Notes: generated by a model from the letters alone, not told the origin. DNA of 64,000 nucleotides from Bugula neritina (GCA_964035545.1 OZ037770.1:3876662-3940661); one strand, 5' to 3'; counted from the stretch's first letter, positions 7,030-64,000 are shown. Program-made: numbers and translations.

Positions 7030-7167
7030 CTCTCAGGCAGAGTAGATAATGTACAGCCCGCCATATTCAACTCTTTAAGTGATGTGAGTGATGACACAAC
7101 TTCTGGTACTGTGTTGAGAGGATTGTGTCCTATGTCTAGTTTCTCTAACTGAGTCAGCTGGCATAGA
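7030..7167 (-). CDS. LRR gene cassette exon 3 (two 23-aa LRRs)
   Basis: ag|..|gt, 138 nt, phase 2/2: LCQLTQLEKLDIGHNPLNTVPEVVSSLTSLKELNMAGCTLSTLPE. Confidence 0.9.
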
Positions 7168-7651
7168 CTATAAACATACAGTGTTTGATATATTCAGTTT
7201 CACTTATATGGAGTGCAATTAATAGAGTTACTATAACTACCACATGATTATGAGGGATAAAAAACTATACTATCAATTTATTCCTTCATAACAGATCTAT
7301 TTAATGTAACACATACTATCATAACTCTTGACTACTAGGTAAAAGTATTACAATTTATTATAATAGTACACAAGTATTTATTTTTAAACTCAGTGAACAC
7401 TAATAAACTAGAAATTACTGCTTTTTATTAACTACATTTTTATAGCACAACAATATATAATGGCATATAACTTTAAAACTGTGTTATTCCCACAATATTA
7501 TAAACCATTGCATATATATGTGTGTGACTTCAAAACATTGCATTTCCTATCTTTCAATTATACAATGGCACACCATAATAACACTTGGTAATCATATAAA
7601 GATGTCAAATATTGAATGTTTAAAACAATACAAAACCTGTGACACACAAAC

Positions 7652-7789
7652 CTCTCAGGTAGAGTAGATAATTTACAGCTCTCCATATTCAACTGTTTAA
7701 GTGATGTGAGTGATGACACAACTTCTGGTACTTTGTAGAGAGGATTCACTCTTATGTCTAGTTTTTCTAACTGATTCAGCTGACACAGA
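7652..7789 (-). CDS. LRR gene cassette exon 2
   Basis: 138 nt, phase 2/2: LCQLNQLEKLDIRVNPLYKVPEVVSSLTSLKQLNMESCKLSTLPE. Confidence 0.9.
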
Positions 7790-8601: not shown

Positions 8602-8739
8602 CTCTCAGGTAGAGTAGATAATTTACAGTCCCTCATGTTCAACTCCTTAAGTGATGTGAGTGATGACACAACTTCTGGTACTATCTTGAGAGGATTCCAG
8701 CCTATGTCTAGTTTCTCTAACTGAGTCAGCTGACACAGA
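8602..8739 (-). CDS. LRR gene cassette exon 1
   Basis: 138 nt, phase 2/2: LCQLTQLEKLDIGWNPLKIVPEVVSSLTSLKELNMRDCKLSTLPE. Confidence 0.9.
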
Positions 8740-9448: not shown

Positions 9449-9680
9449 TTGTCTAGACTTGCTCTGTCAGCCAGGTTAGAAACACGTAGACGCAGGGCTT
9501 CACCAGCAATCTCTCCAATGTTGTTGGGAATATTCCCTTTCAGCTTAAGATCTGTGATATGATAACTCCCAATTTCATGTTTCACCTCGGCAGTAGTATA
9601 TGACTTGGTATTAGCAGACTGTACATTTGACCAGTCTACAGGAGGCTGTCCAGAATGTCTGAACCAGATTGTCATATTCT
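9449..9680 (-). CDS. N-terminal coding exon of the LRR gene
   Basis: Acceptor ttacag|, ATG at 9675, donor AA|gtgagt in phase 2, compatible with the LRR exons. Ends in an LRR-cap-like ITDLKLKGNIPNNIG..LRLRV. Confidence 0.7.
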
Positions 9681-10440
9681 CTGTAACATCATACAGTGAC
9701 AGTGTAATTATTACACAGTGCTAGCAGGTGATGTCTGTCATTCTGAAACCTGTCACATATAACTATTATTTGCTGTGTGTCAGACACTATAGCTATATGT
9801 AGACATGTCTGGTTACTTTAGGTTTACGGAAGTAAAATCTGCAAATTTAAAATGATCTTTAATTCCCTGAAAACAACTACTTTGTGTAGAATCTTCGAAA
9901 TTATGCTGCTTCAGTTTCAATAAAGATATTTTTAAATAATGTTAGCATATATTCAACCTTATATAAATGTATTAAATCATTTTAAAATCATATGAATTTA
10001 AAGCAGCCAAAAAACCGCTGAATTATTATTTCATATCCATGCATGCACTAAAAAGTACAAATAGCAATATCAAGTTAAAACTTTCTATATCTGACACTGA
10101 CTACTTCTTACCCTATGAGTCACACAGCCATGAATGCTAAGTATTGTCTAAATACAAATAGTAACAACCAGTAGATAACTTTTGTTGAAAGCAAAAATTG
10201 TAACTTGGCTTTTCATTACAAAGTTATCAACACAACTCACCATCTGTTACTATGGTTACTAAAGATTTTACTGCTGATTTATTTCAATTCTGTAAGTCTA
10301 CAAGTTAGTAGCCCCACTTGTACAACTTAAAATAAAAAGTAATATGATATAAATCATTGCTGACATAAAAATATATACCAATGTACATGCCAATTTCTTT
10401 AAGGAGTAGATGTATAATCAGTCATGATAAATAAACTTAG

Positions 10441-10780
10441 GTAAACTATAGGTATTTAGATATGTAGGTATTTAGATATGTAGGTATTTTCGTATGTATA
10501 TATAGGTATTTAGGTATGCAAGAAGTTAGGTATGTATAGGTATGTAATAAGTTTATAGGTATGTATGTATTTATGTATGAATGTATTTATATATGTATGT
10601 ATTTATGCATGTAGGTGTTTAGGTGTGTAGGTATTTAAGTATGCAGGTATGTGGGTATTTAGGTATGTATGTATTTAGGTATGTAGGTATTTAGGTAAGT
10701 AGGTATGTATGTATGTATTTAGGTATTTAGGTAGGTAAGTATGTAGGTATGTAGGTATGTGGGTAGGTATGTAAGTCTGT
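10441..10780. repeat. Low-complexity (TAGGTATG/TATT) tandem repeat
   Basis: Direct reading. Confidence 0.85.
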
Positions 10781-11154
10781 AAACTCCTACTGACACAGTA
10801 TACAGCTGTCTACTCGGTCACCTGTATTGTAGGAGGGAACTAGGTAACTCATCTGGCTGGACTGTGTGACAGCAGATATGACTTTGAATCAATACTTTGT
10901 ATATCTCTGTCTCACTGCAATATGAATAATTTACAAACTGTACTGAAATCTTAAAATGAGTGTAATAGAGATTCATATAATCTAGTCCTCTATAATTACT
11001 TTATATAATATTATATGCTGAACTAACTTGAAAAAATTTGCAGACTTAAAAAATAGTATATTGGCTGTGATATTATTTGTAGCTGCCATTATTATGCACT
11101 TTAAATAATAAACTATTTAATACTCAACAGTTAGTTATATACCTATTCTAATAA

Positions 11155-11580
11155 CACAGTTAGTTTAAGGTCATTACTTTCTAGGTTCAGGCACTGCTTT
11201 ATGTTGTTTATAAACGGTTTCCAGGGGATAGCTCGAACAGTTTTTGTCTCACATTAACAAATTTTACATGAAAAGATAGCTCTTGCATTCCTCTTTCATA
11301 TACTTTTTTAATTTTTCAATAAAAATTTTCTGAGAAAGTTATTGCATAATAAGTAAAATTTTACACCCTCCACGTTCCACTGCTGTAGCACAGGGGATTC
11401 ATTTTATAAAGTCTAAAAGTTAAACTTGACATTCCTTGATATATTTTCTCTATAATATACTTTCTTTGTTTTTTGAAATTCTGTTTATGCTCTTCACAAT
11501 TTGGTAAAAACATACACCATTTTGCAAGTTTCACTGCAATTTTCTAAATTCTTCATATGGTGGTTCTAGCTACGCTTCTG
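11155..11580 (+). mobile_element. Dispersed repeat, probable terminus of a TTAA-type DNA transposon (Kolobok/Crypton-like)
   Basis: Starts TTAAGGTCATTAC; a clearly homologous inverted copy lies at ~41960-42380. Superfamily is a guess. Confidence 0.55.
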
Positions 11581-12815
11581 TGACTAATTATAACATTCCT
11601 AGTACGTTTGCTGCTCTGCGCGCTATCACAATAACATATAGTACCCTCTCGCACAAATTGGCAATCTATTGGATTTCTGCCAATATAATGTTCCCTGTTT
11701 TACATTAGCACTTAGCTGAATCATCTCACTATGTTACAATCTATTGAAAATGCCTCAGCACAACATAATTCTTTGTTTGTTTGGCAGAGTTAATTTCAGC
11801 TAAATCACTTCACTTTGCAGTCTCGTCAGTAAAGGTCTGTCTATAGTGCAGCAGGTGTACTTTCAGTTTCTCTAATTCACATATGATTATTTTAAGTACA
11901 TTGTATTCTATGAGATCAATTTAAGGTTTAGCCCAGTGTTCAGTATCTAATTATTATGCATGTATGTTGTCTTACTGTTGAACAAAAGTTAAAAAAACTT
12001 TACAATTAAAGCCATATTTATTATACATGCGTAGGATTTGCATAAGTTGACAAAAAAATTGCAACTAACTAGGGTTGAACCATGACCAACCAATTCCTCG
12101 CCGCGCAAATGGGTTATAATTATTAGGCTGTCAATTCATGTTGATTAGCAGTGAACTGTTGCAATAGCCTCGGGTTACTAGCAAAGCTAATGGTTTTGAA
12201 CAAATAACCCAAAAGTTTAAAAATAAGTAGCTTGCGTATTGCTAGCTACAAAAACAGGTCTGAAATAGACTGGTAAAGCGAGCTCTTATTATAGAATTTG
12301 CAGATGTGTTCTAAAATAAAACTTAAAGGATTGCTCTATCTTGTCTAATAAATGGCCATTTAGGTCAAACACATATAATATTGTGTTTTTCTAAGCATGC
12401 ATTGACAAAAAGCATTTGACCAAAGGTAGAAAAGTTAGTTGAAGTTGAGGGTGTAGATTGGTAACAGCCAAAACGCCGATTTTGAAATGAGCTGGGAAAT
12501 GTGACGTAACAGCGCCAGCATTCCTGCTGGTCACGTGACTATACAAATGAATAACTATAGAAATATGACTGTGAGATGTGATCTTTCAGCTCGTAATTTG
12601 TATATTTATAGAAGTGCAAATGTGAATTATCTCAATCTAGAGTTTTTTGACATTTTAAATAACATGTATGTGATACCATTAGGCCATATTTTGCTTGTAA
12701 ACATTAGAAAAAAGCATTGCAAAAACATGCATTCTTTAGGATGAATGCCTGCGATCGATCTAAACTAGGTCAGATTGTGCAATATTACGGGCACACCAAA
12801 TCTGACCTATATAGC

Positions 12816-14592
12816 CAGGGATGTAGTGGCAAAAATATTCTAGGCCATACTCTCAGGGCGGGGGTCCAGGGGGCCGCCCAGGCCGCCGAAGCTTTCAGAG
12901 TGCTTCTGATGCAAATTTATGCAATTTAAAGCTATTGTGAATTATAATTCTTCTGAAGAAAATCTGTGTTGAAATGTGCACCTCGCTATTATTTTCATAC
13001 CATACCAGCTACATGACGACTGGGCATTGCTGCAAACTATATAAATATTCAGTCTTGTCCTATACCTGTTGACTGCAATGTAATGTAATGTAGTCTTACT
13101 CAACTGCAGTTAGGTTTCTTCTGACACTAAGTCCAACCTGTGCAGAAAAATTGCTGAATATCTCAAAAAGATGGAAGGATAGAGGCAGGTAACAAGTGCT
13201 CTCCAAATGCAACCTGATTACTTTAAATAAATAATACACTGCTGTGCACAGAAAAAGAATAATAGATCAGAACAGAGGAAGATTGCTAATCAGAAAATGT
13301 GTGTTGGTTATTTATAAAGAGCAATTTGAATTGATAACTCATTGGCAAGCAGAAATTGGTTGAAAACCTATTTGGAGTTTGTTAGAGTGCTAGTCTAATC
13401 CATAAGGTGATACCGCCACACCTCCTTACACACAATAAAGCACACCCAAGAAGAGTATGTTAACTTGGTTTTAAAATAAAACCCCTGAGCTTCCACTAGA
13501 TACATCAAGGAAATATACCCCAAAAGAAGAAATTTGACAGTTTTAATATGTGTTAACCTAGAAGAGGATTAAATGTAAAGCCAGACGTTAGTACAATCAA
13601 ACATAAAAGGTTACTTATGGAGGTGTACAGTTTGCAAAATCTTATTGCATTGATAATTAACATGCAATAATGCTAGGTTTTTTTGACCAAAATGTGGATA
13701 TAGTACCTGTAGACCTCAGTGATAAATTTTCATTAGCCTCTCCTACACACCTGGTACTGTTTTTTAAAGACATTTTGATTTTATTTCTGGATTTCATGTT
13801 GGTTTTTTCCAAATTCCATTGCTTATTGACAAAATGCAAGTCCACACAAGATAGACAAGGGCAACCTTCTAGCTGTCACTGCCTTGCTGAGGCCACATTA
13901 TTGGTATATTATAAGAATTCAGTCCTGCCAAATAAAACCTCACTTAATTGTGCTAGAATTAAAATTTAAAAACCATGTTATAGATCTTCCTGTTCCTCAG
14001 TGCACCTGCTTTTTTGAGTTTTCAGTATTTTTTTGCAAAGTTATAGACAAAAATCTACCCATTTTTGGCCAATTTTATCTGAAAAATTTATTTTTCAATC
14101 CCTGCCAAATATCTCCGCAGGAAAGCATGGTATTCGAATAGAGCAAACACTGTCGAAAACCTGAGAAATTTATGCATAGCAAATTTTTGATCTTTTCAAT
14201 AGCCTTCATAGATTTTCTACAAGTTAGTGATTTGTACACCAAAAATGAAAGATTTTTTCCTTAGTAATCACCAATGCACAGCACTTCGCGCTTCAGTGAA
14301 CATGTAGAGATAAGAAGATGGAATATTGATAGCTGCATATTATTCATTGTGTAATCTCAGGCTAAACAATCACAAGTAGGCAACACGCATGCCACCCACA
14401 TAGCATTAACATAGCAAGAATTTAAATTAGATTGTGAGCAAAATTTATGATATTCTCAGTGAGGATGCCCAAACTATCTTGTGCACTAATCATCTTTCAA
14501 AAATATGCCCATACGGGCGTATGGCCTAGAACAGTCTATTTTCTTCTAGGCCATACGGCGTATGGGACTGTATGGGTACCACTACATCCCTG
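12816..14592 (+). mobile_element. Non-autonomous hAT element (1777 bp)
   Basis: TIRs CAGGGATGTAGTGG / CCACTACATCCCTG; perfect 8-bp TSD TATATAGC. Confidence 0.92.
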
Positions 14593-20219: not shown

Positions 20220-21303
20220 GGGCCGGTTCTAGTTCGCTTAACTAAAGCCGACGGAACTGCTTATGCTGACGCCGACTTAGTAACGCTGACGAATAACGGT
20301 ATGGCTTATTTGTTCAAAAGTATTAAGTATCAACTCGATGGAGAAGACTTGGAATATATAAACAATCCGAGACACGCTTCGACTATAATGGACTTGCCAA
20401 CTTATTCAGACGACTACGGTAAATCGAGAGGTCTCAATCAGTTATGGTCAAAAGACACTAGTAACGAAGCTGCCGCCAATAATTTAGGTTTCGCGGCTCA
20501 TCAAGTTTATTTAATACAAAAGCCCAATCCTAAAGGTACTTTTAGCGCTAAGGTAAATCTTAGACATTTGCTGGGTTTTGCCAACGATTACAAAAAAGTT
20601 TTGTACGATATAAAACATCAACTTACGCTAGTACGCGACACCGACGATAACGCCATTTATAGAGATAACGGCGTAGACGCTGGAAAAATAACGTTGGATA
20701 CCGCATATAACTCCTAGTTTTGAAATGAAAAATAAGCTTTATAAAATTATAGAGTCTAAAACTCAACTACCGATGGTATACAGGTCTAGATGGTGCGACA
20801 GGATTTCGGTGCCGCAAACTACAAACTTTACGTGGCGTTTGGGTTCTAGAGCCGATACGGAAAAAGCCCAGCATTATATCGTAGGCTTTCAAACGAATGA
20901 AAACGAAAGTCAAGCGACTAATCCTGCGCTATTCGATCGCGTTAACGTTAAAAGCATATACGCCATGTTAAACAGCGAGCGATATCCCGAAGTCGATTAC
21001 GATATAGATTTCGTTAAAATGAAGTTTAGTAGAGTGTACGGAGAAGCTTCGAGGTTTTGCGGTAAATATTACTGTATAAACGAGCTAATCGCTTATTCAA
21101 ACGTTTTACCTTCGAAATATAGAGATCTTTATGCTTTATTCGTACTAGACGTTAGTAAGCAAAGCGAAACTCTTAAAAATAGCGTGGCGGACATTCAACT
21201 AAAAATTCAGTTTAGTCAAAACGTACCCGCTAATACTCAAGCATACGCGCTAATTTTGTCCAATAAAACCGTGTCTCTTAGATCCGACGGACGTTTAGAA
21301 TAA
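20220..21303 (+). pseudogene. Polinton major capsid protein (double jelly-roll), N-truncated, frameshift ~20700
   Basis: TKADGTAYADADLVTLTNNGMAYLF, LRHLLGFANDYKKVLY, FTWRL, IVGFQT, LNSERYP, LFVLDVSKQSE motifs typical of Polinton MCP. Confidence 0.8.
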
Positions 21304-22394: not shown

Positions 22395-22951
22395 TGTAGT
22401 AGTTTTGTGGGTTATAGAATGAAATCAGACAGAGAACATAACTCCTTGTTATAGAAGAGACAAGAGAGAGAGGTTGCCGTGTGCTTGCAGTACTTTATTG
22501 TAGTAGAGAGAAGTATCCAGTGTGAGCTCCAGTCCGCAAGTGACTGAAGCTCTAAAATGTGTGTCCTTTTATACCAGTGGAACAAAGGACTTCTAGAACC
22601 TTCTACCGACAGCAGGGCTGATGTTCGGCAGAGGATACCGACATTCGTCATGTCGGTAACCGACACTGGAAATATCGGCAACCGACATTCGGTCTGCCTG
22701 CATCCACCTGCCGAAATCGGTCCAACTGTCGGTTTACATGAATCAGCAAAAATGAACGCAACCAAGTGTATGCGTATTGTAACTTATAATTGGGGAAAGG
22801 GGATTAAATGTTTACTATGCCAAAGGCTTAATAATAGCCATAGTATTTAAGGTATTAGAAAGTTACACCACAGACTTAGCTGTAACTACAGTATTTAGAA
22901 AAATAGCCATAAGTAATGTGTCAAGGGGGATAATTCCTAATATTTACCACA
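22395..22951 (-). repeat. 3' LTR
   Basis: Direct repeat of 29518-30074; PPT-like AGGGGG at ~22956-22961 on the minus strand. Confidence 0.95.
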
Positions 22952-23395
22952 CACACCCCCTATCAGAAAGTACACTTTTCTGATACAAAAACAGAGGGTA
23001 AATATAACAAAAGTAAAATAACGGGTCAAAGGGTAAATATAACAAAGGTAAATAACGGGTCAAAGGGTAAACATAACAAAAAGTAAAATAACGGGCCAAA
23101 GGGTAAACATAACAAAGGTAGAATAACGGCCGAGGGGCATAGGGACTAGCATAGGAATACAGGGGTAGGGCTACTGGGAGTGCAGAAAAATAAAAAAAAC
23201 TTGGTTGAGGTTCAGGTTCTAGAGAAAAAAATGGTATAATACTGATAAAAAAATGGGGTAAGGAGAATAAAATAACTTGGACTGGAAGGAATTTATGAGT
23301 ACACACAAAAATATAATAACATGAAAAAAAACTTAGATACTGCAACACACACTATTATTTACACACATATTTGTGATAACACAATTAAACACACT

Positions 23396-23436
<41 letters not shown>

Positions 23437-23669
23437 AAAGAAGTAGTATGAGAGTCTTATATGTAATTAAGTTGCCTGCGTAGGGCCTGAATGTCCTCCT
23501 AGGTCTCCGGATCTCTCCTTTGCGGGGACTGGTATGTGCAGGCTGGCGACAAGGGGGGGGGGCAGGATGATGAGTAGAGACGTCGTGGTGGAGAGTCGGG
23601 AAAGTGAACATCTAGAGGGAGGCTAGGTGGTACGTGGACTGGTGAGTTGTGGGCTGCGGCTGGTTCTTT

Positions 23670-26600
23670 CTACTGTTGTCTATCCTGGCCAGCACGACCC
23701 GTCAGTACGTTCGGTAGCGCCAGTGTTCTCCGTCTTGGCCCGTCGGTGTCCATCCAGACAGCCCCACTGCCCAGGGTCATTTGCGTCTCTTCTGCAGGGA
23801 GTTGAGCTTCTACAGGTAAGGGAAGGTCTTCCAGAGCAATGGGGGCAGACTGGGCCGGGGAGGGGGACCCCGTCGGGCTGACTGGAGCCGAGCCGGGGTT
23901 CCAGATAGAGTGAAAGTCGGGTGGAGTCGCATCGTCTACTCCAGTACCTATGTGGTCAGCTGATGACTCCGGCAGCGGGAGAACCATATCATAAGGATCC
24001 GAGTTAAGATTTGTACGTGTCGGCGATACTGAGACTGGAGTTGAAATGACCGAACCTCGTGTCACATGTTCGGTCATATTCCACGGCGCATTTCGGTGGG
24101 GCAACTCCACGCTCTCAGTATCTGCCGATCTTCGGTACGTGATCTCAATAGTAGTATCTCTGGCAAGGTATCTAGGCCCGTAGGAATGTGGGTTACTGCC
24201 TGTACTAGGCGAATTCTGCCCTTGTGGGGGTAAATCCACGGGTCCTACGTGATAATCGGCTAGATACCCAAGAGGTCTTCTGCTTCTGGCCTGTCTGTCC
24301 AGCTCTACAGGTGCCTCAGGCTGTGGTGGAGGTGCGGTAGGGGCAGGGATCCCTGGGTCACCTCCCTCAGCCTGAGGTGCTCTTTCTGGCACCGGGGCCG
24401 GCTCTGGGGCCGGTGCAACTGGTGGACCAGGTAGAGGAGGGGGTTCTGGTGTCTGGTCCGGTTCCACTGGGTCCTGGACTGCGATCTCCCACTCTCTGGG
24501 CCGAGCCACCCGTCCTCGGGAGATGGGCTGGCGAGCCGGCTCGAGTAGGGGGAGAGCCTGCCCCGCAGCGTCGGGGCTGCCCTCATAGGGTTTTAACCGA
24601 TGCTCGTTTTGGACTGAGACCTGCCCTGAGCGTTCCACACGGTATGTGTGGTTCGGTAAAACCTCTATGACGCAGTATGGCCCCACGAACTTGGGCTGAA
24701 GTTTAGCCGACTATCCGCGCCTCCTGCGGTAGCTCACCATCCATACACAGTCTCCTACTTGGTATAGTGGTGGCTCCTCGGAGTCTTCTGTCCTCGTCTG
24801 CCACTGCTGCTCGCGCAGTGCTTCATGAGCCTGCTCCATCGTCTCGATGAGCTTCCCCACGTACTCATGTACGGGGGCCTCGGGTGCAGGAACATGGTAG
24901 GTTAGGTGCTCCGGGACACGAGTCTCTCGGCCGAGCATCAGGAAGTTTGGGGTTTCCAGGGTGCTGGAGTGTGGTGTACTGCGGTAGGCCCGCATGATTT
25001 GGGGTAGTACCACGTCCCATTCTTCCTGGCCTCGGCTCAAGAGCAGGCTTCGGAGGGCATCTCCTAACATCCGGTTGTTCCTCTCTACGACTCCATTCCC
25101 TTGCGGGTGATATGGGGTCGTCCGGCTTTGATTCACCCCCCATATCTGGCAGAGGTCTCCCATCAGCTGGGACTGGAACTGGGCCCCCTGGTCAGTGTGA
25201 ATCTGCTTGGGAAGCCCGAAATAACAGAATACTTGCTGATCCAGGGTTCGGGCCACGGTGGGAGCTGACGCATCTGGTATAGCCAGCGCATCAGCCCACC
25301 GAGTGAAGTGGTCCGACAGCACCAGTATCCAGGTGTTCCCTCTGGCGGATAGCGGCATAGGTCCGACTAGATCCACGGCCACCACCTGCCACGGCCGACC
25401 AGCGTATAGCCGGCGTCGGCCCGTGGTCTCGGTAGGGCGGCCATGTTTGCTAGCCTGGCAGACCTCGCATTGTCGTATCCGCAGCCGTACGTCCCGAGTC
25501 AGTCCGGGCCAGTACCAGCGCAGTCTCAGACATCTGATGACTGGCCCCTGAGTGGGCCTGCTTGTGGGTGTCCCAGATTATTTCTCGCCGGAGGGCACGT
25601 GGACATACGACGCGGTCCCTCTCACGGCGGTTGTCTGCTGCGAGTGTATTGGTGAGGAGGCCGTCCTGGTTGACCTTGAGGGAATCCCAGCAGCTACAGA
25701 GGTGTCGGTACTCGACGTCCCCTTGTTGCTGCTGTTCCTCGGTAGGTCGGCGGCCCTCCTTCTTGGCCCGGAAGATGTCAGCTACTGCCCCTGGCAGTGT
25801 CTGCTGAAGCCGGCTCAACTCCTTAACGTTTTGATACAGCGTGGGGTTGGCCCGTAAGGCATTGACGGTGTCTGGTGGGTGTTCGGACCAAAGCTGGCCG
25901 CGTTCCCAACTATAGACGTTGTCGTCCCCCAGCTGTCTCTCCACGTCAAGGCGGGCAGGTCCTCCATCTCGCTCCTCAATGTGCAGACACTGCTTGCAGG
26001 CCTCCTCTGGCCGTCTGCTCATCCCATCGGCATTCCCGTGCTTCTTCCCAGCACGGTGCTCGATCCTGTAGGAGAATTCCGCAAGAATCTCCAGCCATCG
26101 GGCCACCTGGCTCGAGGGCTCTGCACGCTTACACAGCCATATTAGAGACGCATGGTCGGTTCACAACCTGAACGCTCTTCCATACAAATATAGCCAGAAG
26201 TGCTTCACCGCCTTAACTACTGCCAGGAGCTCCTTCCTGGTGGTGCAGTAGTTCTTCTCGGCGGGGGAGAGGGTCTTGCTGTAGTAGGCGACGACCACCT
26301 CAGTCCCACCCTGGACCTGTGACAGAACAGCTCCCACGTTGTGGTCGCTGGCGTCGGTGTCCAGGATGTATTCTGTGGCTGGGTCAGGGTACGCCAAGAT
26401 AGGCGCCTCTGTTAGCCGACTTTTGAGGTGGTCAAATGCCTGTTGCTCCTCCTGCGTCCACTGCCACCGGACCCCTTTCGCCGTTAGCCGATTCAGTGGC
26501 TGTGCAACTCCTGCAAACCCGGGGATGTACTGCCGATAGTACCCCACCAGGCCCAGGAATGCGCGTAGCTCTGTGAGGTCTCGAGGGACAGTCCACTCTT

Positions 26601-28597: not shown

Positions 28598-29454
28598 GGC
28601 TGTTTCCCCTTGCGGGGGCATTGCCGCTAGACGTGACCAATGGCGCCACACCCCCAGCAGGTGAGTTGGTTCGGCCGATTTGGTCTAGTCCGAATATCGG
28701 TCCTCTGGCTGCCGGCTTGCTGCTGTTGCAGTCTCACTACTTCCGATTGCAGGCCTTTCACCATGTTTATCAACATGGTGATCTGCGAGGAAGGTGGTGC
28801 AGGGTCAGCAACGGCAGCTACTGTAGTTTCTTCCTTGGCCGCCTCTACCACTTGACTTGCTGTGAAGTCGGCTCTGTGGGGGTTGTCTACCTGATAGTAG
28901 GACCGGCCCATCTCTAGAGCTTCTTCGATCGTGGTGATCTTGGCGGCCAAGTAGTGCTTCTGAAGGGCACTGTCGTTGACAGTGCTGAAGAAGGCCTCGT
29001 AGACGAGCTCTCGCCGCTCCTCTAGAGCGGTTCGGCTGAATGCTATCAATGCCAGTCTTTCAATGGCGTTAGCATGGTCCTGAAGCGAGGTCCTTCGGTC
29101 TCTCCTCATGTTTTGAAGTTTGGTGCGGGCATCTCTAGCAGTCAGACCGAATCGGGCCCGGAGTGCCTGGTAGGTCTGCCCGACATCCTCTCCAATGGCG
29201 TAGCTTTTAGCTGGTCCAGTCAAACTTGACCGCAGCTGCAGAAGACGTACCGGTGCCGGCCATTGGGCGATGGTAGCAACATCTTCGAATTCCCTGATAA
29301 ACTGCTCTACGTCGCAGTCACCTCCGAAAATCGGCGGCCGTAGGCGGTACCTGTCACCAGGTGGGGCCTGATTAGCCGTGCTGACTGCTCGGAGGGCAGT
29401 TACGAGGCTCTCCAGGGTGAGAGCCTCCCCCCCATCCTCGGGGGCCCTTGCCAT
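28573..29454 (-). pseudogene. gag: Gypsy gag with CCHC knuckle interrupted by TAG
   Basis: CWGCGAIGHV*RQCP; the natural stop follows KQPLNNQGSR. Confidence 0.85.
28591..28597 (-). promoter_or_regulatory. -1 ribosomal frameshift heptamer T TTA AAC (gag to pol)
   Basis: X XXY YYZ in the gag frame just before the gag stop; the -1 frame is the open FKQPRLTVD.. ORF. Confidence 0.7.
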
Positions 29455-29498
29455 CTGGCTAGCTCCTTGTCTCTTCCAAGGGCTGCCTGACTATTCTG

Positions 29499-29516
29499 AT
29501 CCCACCGCTGCCACCA
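29499..29516 (-). promoter_or_regulatory. Primer-binding site complementary to tRNA-Leu 3' end
   Basis: TGGTGGCAGCGGTGGGAT, 1 nt from the LTR. Confidence 0.85.
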
Positions 29517-29517
29517 A

Positions 29518-32596: not shown

Positions 32597-32960
32597 ACGA
32601 ATAAAGAATAAGAATATTGATATCGATAGGGCGATTAAAAGGTTAAAAATTCCTAATTTTAGAAGAGTATTTTCGAGAGATGATTCACTCGATAAGCCAC
32701 GTAAAAAAAAATGCGGTGTATTAAATTTAGATGATTTAATGGAAGGTGGTACTCATTGGGTCGCTTGGTATAACAATAAAAAAAAAAATATTATTTCGAT
32801 AGTTTTGGACTTCATCCTCCTCTAAAAATAATGACATATTTTATAATACGGAACGAGTGCAAGAATTTGGTATGGTTATATGCGTACACTTGTCTTTATA
32901 TTTGCTTAAAGAAATGTCTAAAAATGAGTCGCCTCAATTGATTATAAATAGTTTACTATA
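32594..32960 (+). pseudogene. Adenain-like cysteine protease (Polinton PRO)
   Basis: CGVLNLDD..GGTHWVAWY..YFDSFGL.PP..VQ..ICVHL across frameshifts. Confidence 0.8.
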
Positions 32961-32964
32961 ATAA

Positions 32965-45433: not shown

Positions 45434-48400
45434 ATGATGCTATCTGACAAGCTATGTCTCGGTCTGTTAGTGGCTGTGTGTCTTGTAGTGTACCAAGGAG
45501 CTCTCCACTGTGACTTTGTGTTTGATGATGTGTTCGCGGTTAAGGAGAATAAAGACCTCAGGCCAGAAACCTCCTATCTTAACTTGTTCTATAATGACTT
45601 CTGGGGCACTCCCATGAGTAAAGTATGTTGTTTATTCTAGCCCTTATGTAGCTTATCAAAACGTTCAGTAACTGAGTTTATTTAATAATATAGTTCCCTG
45701 ATTGATCAGCTGTATATCTAACTAAGTTTTCATACATATTCTGTTTGTTGCAATAATTTGGTTTTTCTTCAAGTTCATGAACTCAGCTCCTTGATAAAAG
45801 TGAGTTTTATTTGAGTTTATATAATGATATGTTTTAATTTTATCTCTTTGTATGCTTTTGTGGTAATAATTTAGTGTTTTATTTTGGTATTTGTTTATTT
45901 TGTGTCACCACTTTATTTTCTCAAGTTACTCAAGCTGTTATGTTTATTTTTTACACTGCACTAACTATACATTTATGTTTTTAGTTATTGATTAATCAAT
46001 GTTACTCTCAGAAACCTTTAAGCCTTTTGAGTAAAAACTTTTATGGTTTTATGATAATATCAACAGTTTCCCGCATTATAATTCTGAGATATTTCTTGTA
46101 GGAGAAAAGTCACAAATCCTATCGACCTCTAACTGTACTCACTTTCCGATTGAATTACTGGTTTGGAGAACTGGAGCCGTATGGATATCACTTACTCAAC
46201 ATCATTCTACACTCATTAGTCACTGTCCAGTTTTATTGGTGAGCTCAGGCTATGTGAAGATATATTCAATTTTTGTATATTCTCAGGCTATGTAAAGATA
46301 TACTTAAGTATTGTATACTCTCAGGCTATGTAAAGATATACTCAAGTAATGTGTACTCTTAGGCTATGTAAAGATATACTCAAGTATTGTATACTCTCAG
46401 GCTATGTAGAGATATACCCAAGTATTGTATACTCTGAGGCTATGTAAAGATATACTCAAGTATTGTATACTTTCAGGCTATGTAAAGATATAATCAAGTA
46501 TTGTGTACTCTTAGGCTATGTAAAGATATACTCAAGTATTGTATACTCTCAGGCTATGTAAAGATATACTCAAGTATTGTATACTCTCAGGCTATGTAAA
46601 GATATACTCAAGTATTGTATACTCTCAGGTTATGTAAAGATGTACTCAAGTATTTTATACTCTCAGGCTATGTAAAGATATACTCAAGTATTGTATACTC
46701 TCAGGTTATGTAAAGATATACTCAAGTATTGTATACTCTCAGGCTATGTAAAGATATACTCAAGTATTGTATACTCTCAGGCTATGTAAAGATATACTTA
46801 AGTATTGTATACTCTCAGGCTATGTAAAGATATACTCAAGTATTGTATACTCTCAGGCTATGTAAAGATATACTCAAGTATTGTATACTCTCAGGCTATG
46901 TAAAGATATACTCAAGTATTGTATACTCTCAGGCTATGTAAAGATATACTCAAGTATTGTATACTCCCAGGCTATGTATAGATATACTCAAGTATTGTAT
47001 ACTCTCAGGCTATGTAAAGATATACTTAAGTATTGTATACTCTCAGGCTATGTAAAGATATACTAAAGTATTGTATACTCTCAGGCTATGTAAAGATATA
47101 CTCAAGTATTGTATACTCTCAGGCTATGTAAAGATATACTCAAGTATTGTATACTCTCAGGCTATGTAAAGATATACTCAAGTATTGTATACTCTCAGGC
47201 TATGTAAAGATATACTCAAGTATTGTATACTCCCAGGCTATGTATAGATATACTCAAGTATTGTATACTCTCAGGCTATGTAAAGATATACTCAAGTATT
47301 GTATACTCTCAGGCTATGTAAAGATATACTCAAGTATTGTATACTCTCAGGCTATGTAAAGATATACTCAAGTATTGTATACTCTCAGGCTATGTAAAGA
47401 TATACTCAAGTATTGTATACTCCCAGGCTATGTATAGATATACTCAAGTATTGTATACTCTCAGGCTATGTAAAGATATACTGTAGTATTGTATACTCTC
47501 AGGTTATGTAAAGATATACTCAAGTATTGTATACTCTCAGGCTATGTAAAGATATACTCAAGTATTGTATACTCTCAGGCTATGTAAAGATATACTTAAG
47601 TATTGTATACTCTCAGGCTATGTAAAGATATACTCAAGTATTGTATACTCTCAGGCTATGTAAAGATATACTCAAGTATTGTATACTCTCAGGCTATGTA
47701 AAGATATACTCAAGTATTGTATACTCTCAGGCTATGTAAAGATATACTCAAGTATTGTATACTCCCAGGCTATGTATAGATATACTCAAGTATTGTATAC
47801 TCTCAGGCTATGTAAAGATATACTTAAGTATTGTATACTCTCAGGCTATGTAAAGATATACTAAAGTATTGTATACTCTCAGGCTATGTAAAGATATACT
47901 CAAGTATTGTATACTCTCAGGCTATGTAAAGATATACTCAAGTATTGTATACTCTCAGGCTATGTAAAGATATACTCAAGTATTGTATACTCTCAGGCTA
48001 TGTAAAGATATACTCAAGTGCTGTGCGATGGCTAGCCTCAGTTCCTCACTCTTATTTGCCGTTCACCCGGTGCATGTTGAAGCTGTGACTGGCATTGTGG
48101 GTCGGGCCGAATTACTTTCTGCCTCACTGGCTTTATTAGTCATGCTGGTATACGACAAGTCAATCCACAGCAAAGGTAGGGAGCACTGCATTGTCATACT
48201 GACACATGTCAATGAGGTCATCACTAATGTTTTAGAGACTGAGATCAGTCTAATTGATTTAATCATCTATTAAATTATTCATTCAATGTAGTCTTTAGCT
48301 ACATGAGTCAGCTTTGTGTTCAGTTGAAATGGAGTTTTGTATTCTAAAACAAGAAAAATATTTCTGAAGTACAAAATTTGTTACCCGATGAAATATTTAC

Positions 48401-51400: not shown

Positions 51401-53596
51401 TCTATTTACTAATAATTTGTATTGAACGTTAAAACAAAACAGACTTGTTAATGTTTATAATTTGATAGTGAGTGGAAAGTTGAACTGAATGGTTCTATAA
51501 GCAGCTCCGAGTTGGGGGTCACTGAGTGCAGTAGTTTCTGTGTTTGGAGTTAAAGGTTTCAATAAAGCAATAAACCCCAACTCTGAAGATAACTGCTGCA
51601 CTCAGTGACCCCCAACTCAGAGCTGCTTATAGAACCATTCAGTTGCACTAGTTAACTTTGTATACATGATATTATAAACTGCTTCCCTTAGTGTGTTTTT
51701 CCCTTAACTGCATTTCATTTACAACTAAGTATTTAGAAATATTAACTAATGAATATACCACATCTAATCTATGTAGGCTTCAGCTATTCAATATAAATCA
51801 ATTAATTTATATAACTGTACAGTTGTATATGCATATTGCTATGTAATCAATAGTAGTAGTGTGAAGTGCTGTATATAACAGTGTTGTATTGTGGGTAGTT
51901 AACCTATAGTATAATATAATAAGTACTTCACATAGTAATATGAACTCTATTTAGTCTAGTGTCTAGCTATGTTCACCTTTCTTCTAATCAATAGTTCACC
52001 CACCTTTCCCTCAATAACTATAATTTGTAACTATAGATTTATCCAACATTGAGGATTTCGAAATTTAAGAGTTGTGTTCCTTTAAAGACAGTTATAGTTA
52101 ATTCTTACGACACAGAAATTGACTGCCTTCACTAATAAAAAGGATATTGGTTTTGTCATTTCTTTCATTTTTAAATATTTTATTTTTACTAGTTATAACT
52201 TTGTAATTATGTTTCAACTTTTATTGACCCTCCGTGTTTCAATATAATATAATGAAATATAATACCATGTTATTATGACCATTATGTTATTATAATTATA
52301 TATTAAAAAGTTAGTTATATATAGTAACATAATCATAGCACACTATCCTATATATCACAGACCAAGGTTACATATTTGCATGTTCTTCACAACTTGGTAG
52401 TAAAATACTGCTAATTACAGGCAATTATTCAGACATTACTTTCACAATCCTCTCCCCTGGCAACTGTAATTGGCTATTTATTGTTAGTCTTCATCTTAGT
52501 GTAAGTAGTGTTTAGCTACTGTAGGTTATGAGTCTCTGCAGAATTGATAACTTCATGTTATTGATTGCTCATATAACAGTTCATTAGTTACATCTCTATT
52601 CACACTTCATTAGTTACATCCTTCTCACACGCTGCCTGCTGCCTTAGCTACTTCTGTCTTCATTTTCTAGTAACTGCCTAACTTTGTAACTCCATTTCAC
52701 TTTTGCAAAGTCCTTGAAATCTCTCGTCATACTAAACTTTAAAACAAATATAATGTAATTCAAAAACTTGATTTCAATTTAAATTAGAAACTTTGTGTCA
52801 ATTTAAAATGAAAATTTGGTTCCAATTTGAATTACAAACTTGATTTCAATTTATAATTATAATCTTGATGTCAAATTTAAATTAAAACTTTTACATATAA
52901 GCATTGAGCAATAAGCTACACCAGATGTAGAAAATAGTATGCCTCAGTTTAAAGAGAATGTTATAAATAGAAACTGGGTCCCTTGTTATACTCAAATTGC
53001 CTCTAAACTTGTCAGCTTTGAGCAGTGGAACAACTATTCAATGTAGACCTTTGCTAATATTCAAAGTGATGGAAGTTTTGTAAAATATTCTTTAGTGTAG
53101 TATAATTATTGGTGTTATGCATGGGCCTTCCTCAAGTAAACACTGATGTCATCAGTTTATGCTGTGATGTCACTAGTTTAGGCTGTGTTGTCTCCGATTT
53201 CTGTAGCATTTATATAATTAACTTATGCATTGCTTTCACTATAGAATAGAATAATCAAATAATGTAGTCATGTCAACAGTTTGCACAGTTGACATTAGTT
53301 TATATTATGGTGTCACTAGTTTGTGTGGTGATGTCACTAGTTTATGTGGTGATGTCACTGGTGTATATATAATGAATTCACTTGTGTTGCAGTGTTTCTC
53401 CAAAGTAAAGAGTCTAGAACCCAGTAACATCCAGGGCCAACACAACCTCTGTGTAGTCTATGTGGAGAAGGGGGAGCTGGACCTAGCCGAATCCTGTCTT
53501 GCTGCCATCATGGCTGCTGCCCCCACTGAGCATTACGTCCAGCAGCACCTTGCCATTGTCAGACAGCGTCTAGCAGATATAGGAAGACCTACCTAG
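45434..53596 (+). CDS. TMTC3: Protein O-mannosyltransferase TMTC3-like gene; exons 45434-45622, 46102-46238, 47997-48175, 48561-48676, 49507-49682, 50377-50629, 50771-50922, 51100-51288, 53393-53596; central TPR exons missing (possible pseudogene)
   Basis: [80 protein letters not shown]. Exons 1-7 have GT-AG boundaries and consistent phases; exon 7 to 8 is phase-incompatible. Confidence 0.85.
46244..48018 (+). repeat. 38-bp minisatellite, 46 units plus the exonic partial unit
   Basis: Unit GCTATGTAAAGATATACTCAAGTATTGTATACTCTCAG; 46249 to 47997 is exactly 46 x 38. Confidence 0.97.
48723..49055. mobile_element. hAT MITE related to 39088-40833, in TMTC3 intron 4
   Basis: CAGGGCTGTCCAAC / GTTGGACAACCCTT; TSD AGTTACAG/AATTACAG (7/8). 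Confidence 0.75.
49699..49900. mobile_element. Palindromic MITE (degenerate, extra internal arm)
   Basis: Same arms as 51483-51644. Confidence 0.65.
51483..51644. mobile_element. Palindromic MITE with ~50-bp inverted arms
   Basis: AACTGAATGGTTCTATAAGCAGCTC..GAGCTGCTTATAGAACCATTCAGTT. Confidence 0.8.
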
Positions 53597-58558: not shown

Positions 58559-61500
58559 TTAGGAGTTTTCTTCTCTACTAAGCCCATCGAAGCCAGGAAA
58601 CAGGTAAAGTCTTTTACGGAAAGGAAGAGTCTTCCAGATTACAATCAAATTCCTGCTTCTCTCTGAATCTTCATCTGGACACAGTTTCCTAACTAGTTTA
58701 GTCTGTACCTGTAGAGTAAGTAATGACTAGTAAGATTGTTTATCAATTCACTATTATAGCTGTGATAAAATGTAAATTTCAGCTTTTAGAATATTGTTTC
58801 CTACTTTTAACAAATATGAACAGCAAACACTTTGGGAATTGTCTACCGGAGTCATATCAGATGGCATATAGCAGTACAGTGGCACTAGTTATTAGCAAAC
58901 TACAAGAACATATTGACAAGGAAGAGAAACTATAATCAATATAGTGAGCCAATATATGCTAAAGGAATTGTAAGAGCAAAAACTACCAGTTAAACTGGAG
59001 AAAACTAGGAAGGACCTTCTGTTACTAAAACTAAAGTAGACATCTTCTTTTAAAAGACAAAAGGGTTCAAACATAGAAATGAATAAAATGATATGATGAG
59101 AAATAATATTTTAATTTCTTAAATAAAAGTTAAACTAGCCAAAAAAGTATTGTGATTTTTAAACTTTTAAAGTTGAAATAGTTTGTGATTTATAAACCCA
59201 CCTGCTGAAAGATGGTGTAGAGATCCCGGTGACAGGCATGTTTGTAGATTGAAGATACTAAAGCTCTAATCATAGGAGATCCATACTCAGCATGTCTCTT
59301 TGATGCTAAAATACAATTAAGTGCAACCAAAATTTAGGTTTATAGCCAGACCAAGTTTAACAGGTTTTAGTTATGGCATAGGCCTATCATATTTAAAATC
59401 TCAAAGTTCTGGAACACATTTTACTTTTTTCAGTTTAGAAGTTATTAGAATCAAAGCGCTTACAAAATGCGGGAATAATACAAAATTGGTAAACCACATC
59501 TTATATAAGGTACAACAGCTCAGACAAACTTATAGCCAATCACTGTCTCTTATTGTACTTACAACAGATGTTACTCTTTAGAACAAGAAGATTATCAACA
59601 TCCAGTCTGGTCCATCGCTCTTCTATTCTAGGTGCTGGTGGTAAGACAGGTCTGATGGGTCTTATTACACTGGGTGTTTCAGGATATACAATATCATCAT
59701 CAGGTTCAGAATGTGTAGAAGAGACAGCTTCAGTTTCTTCTTCTTGAGGTGCTGCAAGACCAGATCTGTCTGGATTTACCTCAATGTTTGCTGCAACACA
59801 AATAATTTAGTTATCAGGGAAGTAAGATAGATCAAAACATCCATTTTTGTAACAAAGTTGCCTAACCAATTCTATATGACACATTTCTGAAGATATTCCA
59901 TTTTTTTTGTAAAAAATCATCTTAATGAAACAAAGAAGTTTTGACTACTGTGTAACCACTCAAATAAGTGTGTCCGTTTTTATTACAAAACAATATTCAC
60001 CTTCGCTGGAAGCTTCTAGGATGACAACTGTAGGCTTAGGCTTTAAACTCAAAGGAGCGAGCAAATCATAAAAGTCTGTAAGGTTGACCTTCTCAAGGTC
60101 AGTTCCATAGATGCAGTTATCTTCACTACCATGAGTCATAATAACCAGTATTTGACAACCCAAGCCATTGTTTTTTTCTCCTCTTATCTCAGACTTCACA
60201 GCAGACATCATTTCCTACAAATTTGGAAATAACTATAATAATATTATATAATTGATACAAGGTTATGATAACTGAATAAAGGAATAATTTTCCAACTTGC
60301 AAAAACAAAATTTTGACCAGCAATAAACATGATTTGGGTTTTTTATTTAGGCCTTATTTTGAAACATTGATAAACTAAATAGTCAGGTGATTGTGTCAAT
60401 TTTTAAGGTTTGACGAAACAAGCGTCAGGTTTCATATAGATAAACTGATTGAATACTATTGCTATCAGTCTAACAATATTATACCTCTGCTTTTAGGTCT
60501 GTGTGTGTCTCAACATCAAACTTGAGAGATTTCAACATGAGCGACATATTCTCAACATCAGCATCTGAACCTTCCCTGCACAAGTCTGGTCTTTCAACAA
60601 AGTTCTTGTTGTTTATTATCAGAGCTTTCCCTCTCTCTCTGGTCATACTGAACACCTGGATACAATTTTCAGACAATCGCATACAGTTGTGACAAACAAG
60701 TATGTATATTGACAGTATATTTTGAAGCACTCCAAGAAAAATAATTACAATTATTCTAGAGCTCAAGATGCCATTTGGAGCTTCAAAGTTGGAAGTCTCA
60801 TAGAAAGCAGTATAGTGCACTCTCTTGCAAAATCAATTTTTTATTTTTATGCTAGGTTTTAAGTTCATTACTTTTTAGCTAAGTTGAATAAAAAAAATTT
60901 GTTTAAAAGATCTATTGCCAGCTTTACCAACAAAACATTTAAATAGTCAATTAAGTGTTAATTGGTATTCTGGCACGAGTCATTCAGGATATGATGTAAT
61001 GAGGTTACAAAATACAAGTTATTACACTGCATGACTATACTTTATTGAAAATTTCTTTTATTTAACGTTAAGTTTTTACAAAACAAGCATGTATTTGCAA
61101 GGCTGTAAAACTAAATAAGGACCATTTATGGCAACAATAAAATTTGTTTGCATATAACACTTTACTGGCCTTAAAATAGACCATGGTCTAATTTATGTAA
61201 ACATAATTTTCTAAACCAAACTATCTGCAAAACATTCACTTAGCTTACAGATGCAAATGATTGCAATAGAACATTATGGTAAATTCAACTTTAAGCTTGA
61301 AGGTCGGAAAAGAAATCATACTATAAAATGTTTGCCCAACTAGGATTACTCTATATGATCATAGGAGTTACTACTGGAAAATCCCAACCCTTCATCCCAA
61401 GCAATTCCTCTGATTTCTATTTATTATTCCTTCAGCCTTCAGGTTCTCTTAGCCTCTGACCTTTCTAGGAGTACTTCTACTGCTACTACTACTCTTCACT

Positions 61501-64000
61501 AAAGGTCAAAAAAGCCCAGAAAAAATTGCCCTGCACCTCCACTGGAATTCAAATGGCAGAAGTCTAACTTTCAAGCATGCAAGGCAGGATAAACATTACA
61601 CCACAAGCACTAATAAGTGATCTCCACACAACAGATGCCTCCTAACCATGACAACCAATTAAACCCTAAACTAATAAAAGCAGAAAAGAAACTATTATGG
61701 TTGGACCAAAAAGTATAAGTATAGTAAAATGATGGAATTTGAAAATTTGCATGCATTCAGATCAATTGATTTTTAAATCTAATTGAACTGCACGTGACAA
61801 TCTAGTAAAAGGAGTTTTAGAAACTAAAATACTTTACTGAGTGGAGAAAGGAGAGCTGCTACAACTTGTGTTCATCAACTTATACATTCACCTTGTCAGT
61901 GTTTGAGATGAGTTGTTTTATCTTTGGGTTGGTTGTTGTCTTTAGTTGAATTTTTATTAACTTCATGCCTTCTTCAGGTTGAAAATTTTCATCATCTTCA
62001 GAGAGATCACTCAGATCATCATCATTTAACCCACCTACAGTCACATGATTAGACAGATTATTTTCAAAATTTGAAACCATAAACTACATATCTTGCTTAG
62101 ACAGGAGAAGAAGCAATTAATTTCAAAAATCACAATTAGATATGATTTGTAGGGAAATGTAGGGCAAAATTTGCAAAGCCTATAATTTTAACAATACTGC
62201 TGGTATAAAAAGTAAGTCCTGTCTAAAAAGTTTACCATTTGAATTGTTCTGCTCTCTTCGAATTTTGAGCTCAGAAAGAAACTTTTTCAATTGATTTGTT
62301 TCTGCTTCAGATAAAGTCTCACCTGATCAAAACAGACATAATTAGTAACATTAAGACTAGATGGGAGGCATTAGAAGAATATGAGACACAATCGAAAGCT
62401 CATGTATCAAGTTTACACTTTACAAGTAGGCGTAGAAGTTCATTAACGCAGCTGGGTAGTTTGCTAATGTTCATCTGTTATTGAAATTCATTATTGCTTG
62501 GAAAAATAGTAGATATGCTTTGATAGTGTAACAAAATATTTAAAAACTTTTGGGCAAAGCAATCAAAAGTGAATCATAGTTGTAAACATACATGGATGAA
62601 TTAGAGCACTGGGTATCTCTTCATCGATACACAATATCTTTGAAGATCCATGACACTTCTTGACATTTGGTAGCAGTTGGTTTTTTAGAGAACGGAGACA
62701 CCATTTAGGATGCAAAAGCCTTTTAGGGCAAGAAACCCCCAGTAGCATGCAGTGAGCACAGAGGCAGGCAGTAACTGGTCGACTAGCAGTCCAAGTTTCC
62801 ATCACATGTCGAAGAATGTTGTTTGTGGCTGAGATGAGTTTCTCCCACATCCTTGAAATGTGAGGAGCATCGGATGACACATAGAGTAAGACTCTTCTAG
62901 AATCATAATCATGTGTCAGCTGTGTGTATGTCTCATCTTGATAGACAGTAGCTCCATTTCTCTTCACCCTCATTGTAGCAAACTCTTTAGAAAACAATTC
63001 TAGCAAACCAACTGTCATTTGGTGGTAGACATGCTGCGGTAAAGCTAGGCCCTTAAACTTTATCTCAGTGTGAAAGACCATATCCTTTGGTGAAGTGTAT
63101 GACACACCGTGATGTTCCTTAGCAAACTGAGGGATGATGAAGTACGGTTCACGGACATCATTTTCCAGGGGGCCATATAACAAACGAAATGTTCTAAGCA
63201 AGCAAACAGCAGTTTCAACATCATGGGAGCTTTTGAATAATGTTTCCTTTGCGATCAAATTTGTTAGAAGAGATTTCATCATCAAGCCTGTTGTTTTGAA
63301 GCAATTCACAGACTCTTCAAACTCTTCTGCTTCAATTCTCAACCCTTCTTCGGAAATGCATGATTGGAATTGATCAACTCTTTTCTGCCAGATCTCTGGG
63401 TCATGATGATACAAGACACATAGTAGTTTGGTGACTTCTGTGATCTTGTGAAATATGTATGGTTTAAGTGCATCAATATTTTTATACCAGAGAACTTTAC
63501 CGCAGTCGTGCATGTATGTGAGAATGGTATCTCGCTGATGTGGTTCAACCTCAAAGCCTTCTTTTGTCAATTCTGACAGAATAAATGAAAAAGAGCTGAA
63601 AGCTCCGCTTAAAGACAAAACCTTCTCATTCACTTCTTCCCAGATCAGTGGCAAAAGCTTAACAAAGGGCTGACTACTTAGAAGAAGCGAGCTCTTTATC
63701 ATTTCAAACTCAACATACTTGTCATCCTTTCCAATCCCATAAACATCTTCACTGGCAAAAACCTTTCCATTTGATGAATTGAAATGCTGTATTTTCGCAA
63801 AATCTCCATCTGAACTTTTCTCTTCATCAAGAACGTTTTTGCACAGCTGTTCAGACACGCTAAGAAAGTTTTCTTTAAGCTGTTGGAACTGCTGACTCTG
63901 AAACTTATCCTTGTGTGTGAAGACAAGCTTAGGTGGGCCAAGAGATGGATGGGCGAGATAGAGGTGAGACATGAAGTCAAAGGCCAACTTTCTGACAGCC
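58559..64000 (-). CDS. Roc-COR-caspase-like fusion gene, 3' part; exons >64000-62592, 62322-62236, 62034-61892, 60655-60485, 60214-60001, 59790-59563, 59305-59202, 58708-58559
   Basis: Roc G4-like LVFTHKDK; COR-like ILTYMHDCGKVLWY..YIF..YFIIP..LP..VYHQM. Caspase p20 RGKALIINN..REGSDAD..IMTHG..IYGTD..KPK..LEASSE; p10 SKR..GSPMIRAL..DL..TL..KRLYLFPG. All seven introns are GT-AG, and exon lengths 87/143/171/214/228/104/150 keep the frame. Confidence 0.88.
61320..61612 (-). mobile_element. Probable tRNA-derived SINE in an intron
   Basis: Minus-strand head TGTGGTGTAATG (A-box-like) ... TTTGAATTCC (B-box-like) at tRNA-like spacing; degenerate. Confidence 0.45.

Follow-up and report, generated by a model that had tools for sequence, protein, structure and literature searches.

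We analysed a 64,000-nucleotide (nt) window of the genome of the bryozoan Bugula neritina, AT-rich animal DNA (~31% GC) that is dense in transposons, and found parts of two genes on its minus strand, designated here gene A and gene B. Gene A runs from 64000 to 58559 and is the 3' part of an intact gene that encodes the end of a Roc GTPase domain, a COR domain and a caspase domain on canonically spliced exons. The start codon of gene B lies 48.9 kb downstream of the gene A stop codon on the same strand, in an exon at 9675-9449 that is followed by three 138-nt leucine-rich repeat (LRR) exons. These results confirmed two claims of an earlier reading of the same DNA (hereafter the original prediction), which had placed the 3' half of a Roc-COR-caspase gene at the window end and the 5' half of an LRR gene about 49 kb downstream; its start coordinate, 7030, proved to be the last base of the third LRR exon of gene B. 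That both halves might form one gene was ruled out, as gene A has its own stop codon (58561-58559) and gene B its own family-type ATG exon. We consider it probable that the window carries parts of two members of a lineage-specific Roco expansion in cheilostome bryozoans, in which a complete member would be a single cytosolic LRR-Roc-COR-caspase sensor chain. The order in such a member is a short N-terminal exon, a variable number of LRR-pair exons, Roc, COR, an acidic linker and a classical animal caspase.

Relatives of the two genes were drawn from two Joint Genome Institute (JGI) metagenomes labelled Bugula neritina (3300002729 and 3300003318), whose contigs carry the prefix AY690838, the accession under which GenBank lists the mitochondrial genome of Bugula neritina. 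Related metagenome contigs are referred to as loci L001-L024, and clusters of large-exon open reading frames (ORFs) as P0001-P0036. The caspase and LRR parts of the window were searched one exon at a time, and the Pfam scores given for them are per exon. The annotated proteins nearest to the window family were those of the cheilostome bryozoan Watersipora subatra.

Gene A and the LRR-Roc-COR-caspase family

The LRR-Roc-COR-caspase architecture is present in single genes. Locus L002 contains, as one gene, exon 1 (from 6008), five 144-nt phase 2-2 LRR exons, a large LRR-Roc-COR exon (9833-12001), an acidic linker and caspase exons (12748-14117) with an intact catalytic Cys. The same layout was found in L014, where the LRR exons measure 141, 144 and 138 nt, and part of it in L001 and L011/L012. 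Two Watersipora models, XP_067947674.1 (1419 aa, 'MFHAS1 homolog') and XP_067948342.1 (1413 aa, 'uncharacterized protein'), share this architecture; in both, LRRs are combined with a stretch that shows homology to the Roc-COR exon and with a Peptidase_C14 domain (127-138 bits) in which the catalytic His and Cys are intact (QACSG/QACGG), and the match to the window family spans the large exon (E 1e-83 to 1e-101). The separate Pfam models for Roc and COR score weakly or not at all on the pair, which is 30-33% identical to the window-type protein and comes from a different cheilostome suborder. The RefSeq name was given automatically and disregards the caspase domain. When the family caspase domain was compared with the PDB, using the Watersipora sequence P0063, the best matches were caspase-3, CED-3 and caspase-9 (E 1e-21). 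The family is expanded. Its large exon fell into 36 clusters at 90% identity and exon 1 into 22 clusters, and an exhaustive HMMER search with P0002 retrieved 107 clusters (50% identity) at E<=1e-30. A literature search found no paper on a bryozoan LRR-Roc-COR-caspase family.

The 3' part of the gene A large exon (62592-64000, minus strand) encodes the end of Roc, COR-A, COR-B and a CxHC...C motif, stays open past the window end, and leaves in phase 1 through the donor GTATGT at 62591. Only the last ~45 residues of Roc lie inside the window, including the G4 motif THKD (codons 63918-63907). The open frame (474-aa listed part) was 60-91% identical to the 36 ORF clusters (507-735 aa), which contain LRRs, Roc (PF08477) and COR within one exon; the window edge therefore cuts the large exon inside Roc. 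A full Roc domain is present in P0001 and P0002, which are 87-91% identical to gene A (Pfam Roc 32.5 bits; cut-off 27), and the G1 (GxxxxGKT), G3 (DxGGQ) and G4 motifs were nearly invariant among 75 family members.

To examine COR, a 469-aa part of the exon was folded by AlphaFold with the 75-sequence family alignment. The model had a predicted local distance difference test score (pLDDT) of 91 and a predicted template modelling score (pTM) of 0.88, and its top 37 Foldseek matches in the PDB were all Roco COR structures, among them Chlorobaculum tepidum Roco (CtRoco; 3dpt, E 1e-11, TM score 0.60-0.63), LRRK1, LRRK2 and M. barkeri Roco2. Gene A is thus predicted to carry COR-A and COR-B directly after Roc, a call made on the match of the fold model to Roco COR because the corresponding Pfam scores are sub-threshold. 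The family profile also aligned in a single stretch with LRRK1 551-940 and LRRK2 1248-1599, which cover the last LRRs, Roc and COR-A.

The end of COR-B carries a Cys/His motif of the form C-x-C-x-H-C...C...C-H...C (62593-62760; residues 412-457 when the exon is translated). No variation was seen at C414, C417 or C457, and hardly any at H416, among the 75 family members, including those of Watersipora and amphioxus, and the motif may represent a zinc site.

The remainder of gene A consists of six minus-strand exons. An acidic linker exon (61892-62034; 143 nt, entered in phase 1 and left in phase 0) is 55% identical to the linker exon of L002. Caspase exon 1 (60485-60655), where the large subunit starts, is 79% identical to L002 and scored 38.4 bits with Peptidase_C14, against a PF00656 cut-off of 21.4; later exons reached 19.2 and 14.4 bits. 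Caspase exon 2 (60001-60214) carries the catalytic His in THG (VIMTHG, codon 60133-60131) and has Ser in place of the catalytic Cys. Caspase exon 3 (59563-59790), homologous to L002, L014 and L004, encodes the small-subunit start and an Asp-rich EPDDD stretch that sits where caspases have their inter-subunit linker. Caspase exon 4 (59202-59305; small subunit) is 72-76% identical to L002 and has a weak Peptidase_C14 match, and the last exon (58559-58708; 53-57% identity to L002 and L014) ends ...LYLFPGF... before a TAA stop. All splice sites, read directly, are GT/AG, and all phases agree. The peptide tails 'PCMF' (62586-62592) and 'C(K/E)' (59557-59563), which recur at the same places in L002, L004 and L014, are read-through of the conserved GTATGT/GTAAGT donors and not protein; they are a trap for ORF-based metagenome annotation.

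Analysis of the catalytic site revealed a Ser codon at the Cys position of gene A (ILEASSEG, TCC at 60010-60008), and the QACxG feature is absent. The collinear locus L004, which is 87% identical to gene A, has TGC at this codon, and Cys is likewise retained in L002, L014 and L011 and in P0063, P0078, P0075 and P0159. The term '(pseudo)caspase' used in the original prediction is therefore apt for the window copy but not for the family, since four paralogues, three Watersipora proteins and an amphioxus protein keep the Cys. Comparison of gene A with L004 gave a ratio of nonsynonymous to synonymous substitution rates (dN/dS) of 0.24 across the COR part and of 0.32 across the caspase exons, so that gene A is, by its codon changes, a constrained gene and not a decaying one. 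While the family as a whole appears to comprise caspases, gene A probably encodes an inactive caspase homologue, most likely a catalytically dead regulator or decoy that resembles cFLIP in idea. It is also conceivable, though unlikely, that the Ser reflects a mistake in sequencing or assembly, or else a rare allele, and that gene A is an ordinary active Roco-caspase. A single base separates TCC from the TGC of L004, the remaining caspase domain of gene A is constrained, and Cys was kept in every other copy examined, all of which would fit an error; however, there is no sign of low quality in the sequence around the TCC codon, and expanded caspase families often contain pseudo-caspases whose fold is otherwise conserved. 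We thus retain the inactive homologue as the preferred reading of gene A.

Gene B and its 3' end

Exon 1 of gene B (9449-9675, minus strand; 227 nt) has its ATG at 9675, contains a WFRHSG motif and leaves in phase 2 through the donor GTGAGT. It is followed by exactly three LRR exons on the same strand (8602-8739, 7652-7789 and 7030-7167), each 138 nt long, phase 2-2 and encoding two LRRs; the second matched Pfam LRR_4 (E 3.8e-5) and the third is the last recognisable exon. Together with its flanking intron the LRR exon forms a tandem repeat with 76-86% identity between copies. Exon 1 has 22 relatives in the same metagenomes (69-82% identity) and matches exon 1 of L014 (E 1.6e-5), with which it has the WFRHSG motif in common; exon 1 of L014 in turn matches that of L002 (9e-15). 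The LRR exons share the family size class (138-144 nt), phase 2-2 and the ending C.L..LP. with those of L001, L002, L011 and L014. Because both the exon 1 homology and the LRR exon design match confirmed family genes, gene B is, on these sequence grounds, the 5' end of a member of the LRR-Roc-COR-caspase family.

The original prediction had described the two genes as neighbouring, clustered paralogues of one family. The architecture of L002, L014 and the Watersipora proteins and the exon 1 and LRR design of gene B support the family relationship, but a continuation of gene B into Roc-COR-caspase was not recovered. 'Clustered' is a weak description, as the two family genes share a strand but are separated by 49 kb of DNA that holds transposons and a TMTC-like gene.

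Past the last LRR exon of gene B, positions 1-7029 of the window contain no Roc, COR, caspase or any other family match, and are filled by a (TG)n tract, a Penelope-like reverse transcriptase (RT)/GIY-YIG pair and a pogo-like ORF. A COR-A-like match at 486-656 (minus strand; E 0.023, 28% identity) was rejected as chance, because the 56-aa ORF stands alone and nothing of the family was matched near it. We also examined other loci of the subfamily with 138-nt LRR exons. L017 has six LRR exons and then reaches the contig end, the L022 contig also ends too early, and in L021 and L024 the LRR exons run straight into GC-rich Gypsy-type elements. Comparison between these loci revealed nothing conserved downstream of the last LRR exon. 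A metagenome scan with the three LRR exons of gene B returned only unrelated LRR genes (37-47% identity), and none of the contigs retrieved joins a 138-nt LRR array to a Roc-COR exon.

These data bear on a second explanation, namely that gene B is a truncated 5' fragment (a pseudogene or an LRR-only gene) cut off by transposon insertion or partial duplication, which would leave one real family gene in the window. Truncation would account for repeats standing at 1-7029 where Roc, COR and caspase exons are expected from family introns of normally 0.1-1 kb, for the Gypsy-type elements met directly past the LRR exons in L021 and L024, and for the lack of conservation past the last LRR exon among loci. 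However, exon 1 and the three LRR exons are open and have canonical splice sites, the framework codons are conserved (dN 0.05), and all 22 variants of exon 1 are open, which speaks for a living subfamily; in addition, a 3' part further away could have been missed, given how short the metagenome contigs are. We regard truncation as a serious possibility, though one that falls short of even. The chances that gene B has a Roc-COR-caspase part beyond position 1 are evenly balanced, and the small share left by these two outcomes belongs to some other 3' end. The 3' part would thus either lie outside the window, beyond a transposon-filled intron, or have been lost.

Several minor features were observed around gene B. 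The Penelope-like element spans 2227-6227, with an RT-like ORF of 529 aa (4105-5694) and a GIY-YIG-like ORF (5712-6227) on the plus strand and an inverted partial copy at 2227-3609, and occupies the space expected for the next exons of gene B; Pfam gave zero matches here, and we take the element to be Penelope-like from its motifs. Just upstream of gene B lies a degenerate tandem repeat (10449-10803) with ~42 copies of an 8-nt unit (TAGGTATG). On the minus strand of both L015 (5565-5795) and L016 (5394-5624), a second called gene of 76 aa is found, ~1.7-1.9 kb from the exon-1 copy and on the strand opposite to it; neither 76-aa gene had a tblastn match to exon 1.

LRR variation, predicted mechanism and known systems

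The three LRR exons of the window were too few for statistics, and variation was measured across 20 LRR exons of the subfamily. Amino-acid entropy was highest at positions 14, 36, 37 and 39 and formed smaller peaks at 11, 13, 18 and 34; in either repeat, these sites correspond to LxxLxLxxNxL motif positions 5, 7, 8 and 10. Calculation of dN/dS at sites picked by entropy was discarded as circular, and concave sites were instead fixed beforehand from the motif (positions 2, 3, 5, 7 and 8), with comparisons made within genes. This analysis revealed a dN of 0.32 and a dN/dS of 1.30 at the concave sites, compared with 0.07 and 0.58 at all remaining LRR sites. Diversification focused on the predicted binding (concave) face is thus supported, and formal positive selection on these sites is only suggested. 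The description of the LRR gene as 'hypervariable' in the original prediction held for the concave positions of the subfamily exons, but not as a statement that could be drawn from the three exons of the window.

Domain content, exon structure, family size, constraint and focused LRR variation are established for the family. From Roco and caspase biology we infer ligand sensing, GTP control, dimerisation-driven caspase activation and an immune or allorecognition role. By this analogy, the LRR solenoid would sense a ligand and the nucleotide state of Roc would shift; the change in Roc would alter COR-mediated dimerisation and bring two caspase domains together; and their proximity would lead to activation with self-cleavage in the Asp-rich inter-subunit linker. 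The outcome would be cell death or substrate cleavage, making the protein a single-chain, GTPase-driven analogue of an NLR (nucleotide-binding, leucine-rich repeat receptor) inflammasome, and a decoy role would fall to copies that lack the Cys, gene A among them. An immune or allorecognition role is suggested solely by the expansion of the family and the diversification of its LRRs. Taken further, Roco-caspases might be one of the main classes of intracellular immune or allorecognition receptors of bryozoans, acting as one-chain 'inflammasomes' in which COR dimerisation under GTP control sets off the fused caspase directly, LRR exon cassettes of symmetric phase (duplicated, lost and perhaps alternatively spliced) give diversity and Cys-less copies serve as built-in decoys, a tentative proposal that we hold to be doubtful.

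Several points weigh against the family reading and the mechanism proposed for it. On the window ORF, the Pfam models for COR-A and COR-B scored 19 and 13 bits, sub-threshold although in the correct order. The Cys-to-Ser change of gene A rests on one base in one assembly and could be a polymorphism or an error. A dN/dS above 1 at concave sites was uneven between genes and was not seen in the three window exons alone. Five loci have LRR exons of the 138-nt type (gene B of the window, L017, L021, L022 and L024), none of which reaches a Roc-COR exon, and this subfamily could be LRR-only or largely truncated. The CtRoco dimer is reportedly monomerised by GTP binding, a result ascribed to Deyaert and colleagues in 2017, and the direction of GTP control is therefore uncertain for the family. 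Finally, the role could be a non-immune one, for example in cyclic polypide degeneration.

This last point was considered as an explanation in its own right, in which the family is a developmental regulator of cell death (e.g. in the cyclic polypide degeneration of zooids), not an immune or allorecognition sensor, and the LRRs are a scaffold. The caspase is of the classical apoptotic type, and animal Roco proteins (DAPK1, LRRK1/2 and MFHAS1) act in cell death, trafficking and signalling, not in direct pathogen sensing. However, the family has dozens of divergent paralogues, and its variation in exon number and its concave-face variability are marks of conflict-driven receptors and not of housekeeping genes. 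A developmental role is therefore improbable, and a sensor role for the family is preferred.

We next compared the family with known systems. The logic resembles that of NLR/inflammasome sensors, in which a variable LRR sensor and a nucleotide switch control oligomerisation and caspases are activated by proximity. NLRs differ in having a STAND (signal transduction ATPase with numerous domains) ATPase, whereas the family has its LRRs N-terminal to the switch and its caspase fused, with no recruitment by way of CARD/PYD; the family would be expected to assemble as a dimer, as opposed to the wheel of NLRs. Pfam scans of family members detected no NACHT/NB-ARC STAND domain, Roc being the only NTPase. 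MFHAS1, LRRK1, LRRK2, DAPK1 and CtRoco share the Roc-COR tandem after LRRs, with a match in COR fold for CtRoco, LRRK1 and LRRK2. In contrast, their output is a kinase, a death domain or nothing and never a caspase, they are single-copy conserved genes with no expansion, and their COR identity to the family is about 10-15%. With a caspase after COR and a large expansion, the bryozoan genes do not appear to be MFHAS1 orthologues.

Other caspase-bearing or immune-type Roco proteins have been described. The amphioxus protein XP_002614028.1 of Branchiostoma floridae (BRAFLDRAFT_67388, 1609 aa) has LRR-Roc-COR-A-COR-B-Peptidase_C14 in one polypeptide with QACRG intact. Its Roc-COR, however, is 46% identical to amphioxus Roco-GT4 and ~20% identical to the bryozoan proteins, and the amphioxus caspase fusion therefore looks independent of the bryozoan one, as judged from pairwise similarity and not from a tree. 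Bacterial LRR-AP-GTPase(Roc)-COR-effector proteins have been proposed as NLR-like conflict systems (Kaur, Iyer, Burroughs, Aravind 2021, PMC8195603). They share with the family LRRs at the N-terminus that evolve fast, a Roc-COR switch, C-terminal effectors that vary and can be caspases, and multiple paralogues per genome (PMC8195603). They differ in being prokaryotic proteins from unspliced genes; in the bryozoan family the effector is a caspase of the classical animal type, and the fusion was therefore made within animals. An NLR-like logic built on a GTPase, as put forward in the original prediction, is plausible for the family as an extension from known systems, but its novelty was overstated, since it had already been proposed for bacterial Roco proteins, including those with caspase effectors (PMC8195603). 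In molluscs, LRR-Roc-COR-TIR/Death proteins have been noted in the Aplysia immunome (PMC9334734). These are also lophotrochozoan Roco proteins with immune-type signalling domains, but they carry an adaptor domain (TIR or Death) and no executioner protease (PMC9334734). What is new here is an exon-modular, expanded animal Roco family fused to a classical caspase; the idea and the architecture were already in the literature and databases.

If the proposed mechanism is true, innate-immune or cell-death sensing in an animal would be built on a Roc-COR GTPase rather than on a STAND ATPase, and the sensor would carry its executioner protease as a fused domain. The concept of Roco proteins as a conflict system, argued mainly from bacterial genomes, would become testable in an animal, and the family would offer a simple model for the control of an output domain by Roc-COR dimerisation, which bears on LRRK2. 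It would also provide candidate genes for immunity, symbiont control or colony allorecognition in bryozoans, whose immune system is almost undescribed; Bugula neritina hosts a bryostatin-producing symbiont. The apparently independent amphioxus fusion suggests recurrent effector swapping on Roco scaffolds.

The region between gene A and gene B

The 49 kb between gene A and gene B contain a Gypsy element, Polinton/virus-like remnants and a TMTC-like gene. A search of the whole window against Rfam identified zero RNA families. The Gypsy element is a Ty3/Gypsy long terminal repeat (LTR) retrotransposon on the minus strand (22395-29817), with a GC content of 55-60% within the 31% GC genome. The LTRs, each 300 nt long, share 99% identity, and the ORFs for gag, protease, RT-RNaseH and integrase remain largely open, which suggests a recent insertion. 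For the GC-rich block at 23.6-30 kb, an origin by bacterial contamination or horizontal transfer was ruled out, as the block is this Ty3/Gypsy element with its near-identical LTRs. Related GC-rich elements are those located directly past the LRR exons in L021 and L024.

The regions 20301-21303 and 30486-34716 hold a double jelly-roll (DJR) capsid-like gene that is split into two ORFs (Pfam DJR-like, E 2.5e-11 and 6e-28), together with ORFs resembling protein-primed family-B polymerases and a repeat-rich ORF of fibre-like type. All of these are Polinton/Maverick or virus-like remnants. TMTC-like exons (transmembrane plus tetratricopeptide repeat, TPR) were identified at 45452-45622 and 53270-53596 on the plus strand, opposite to the Roco genes, from motifs and a weak TPR_19 match only.

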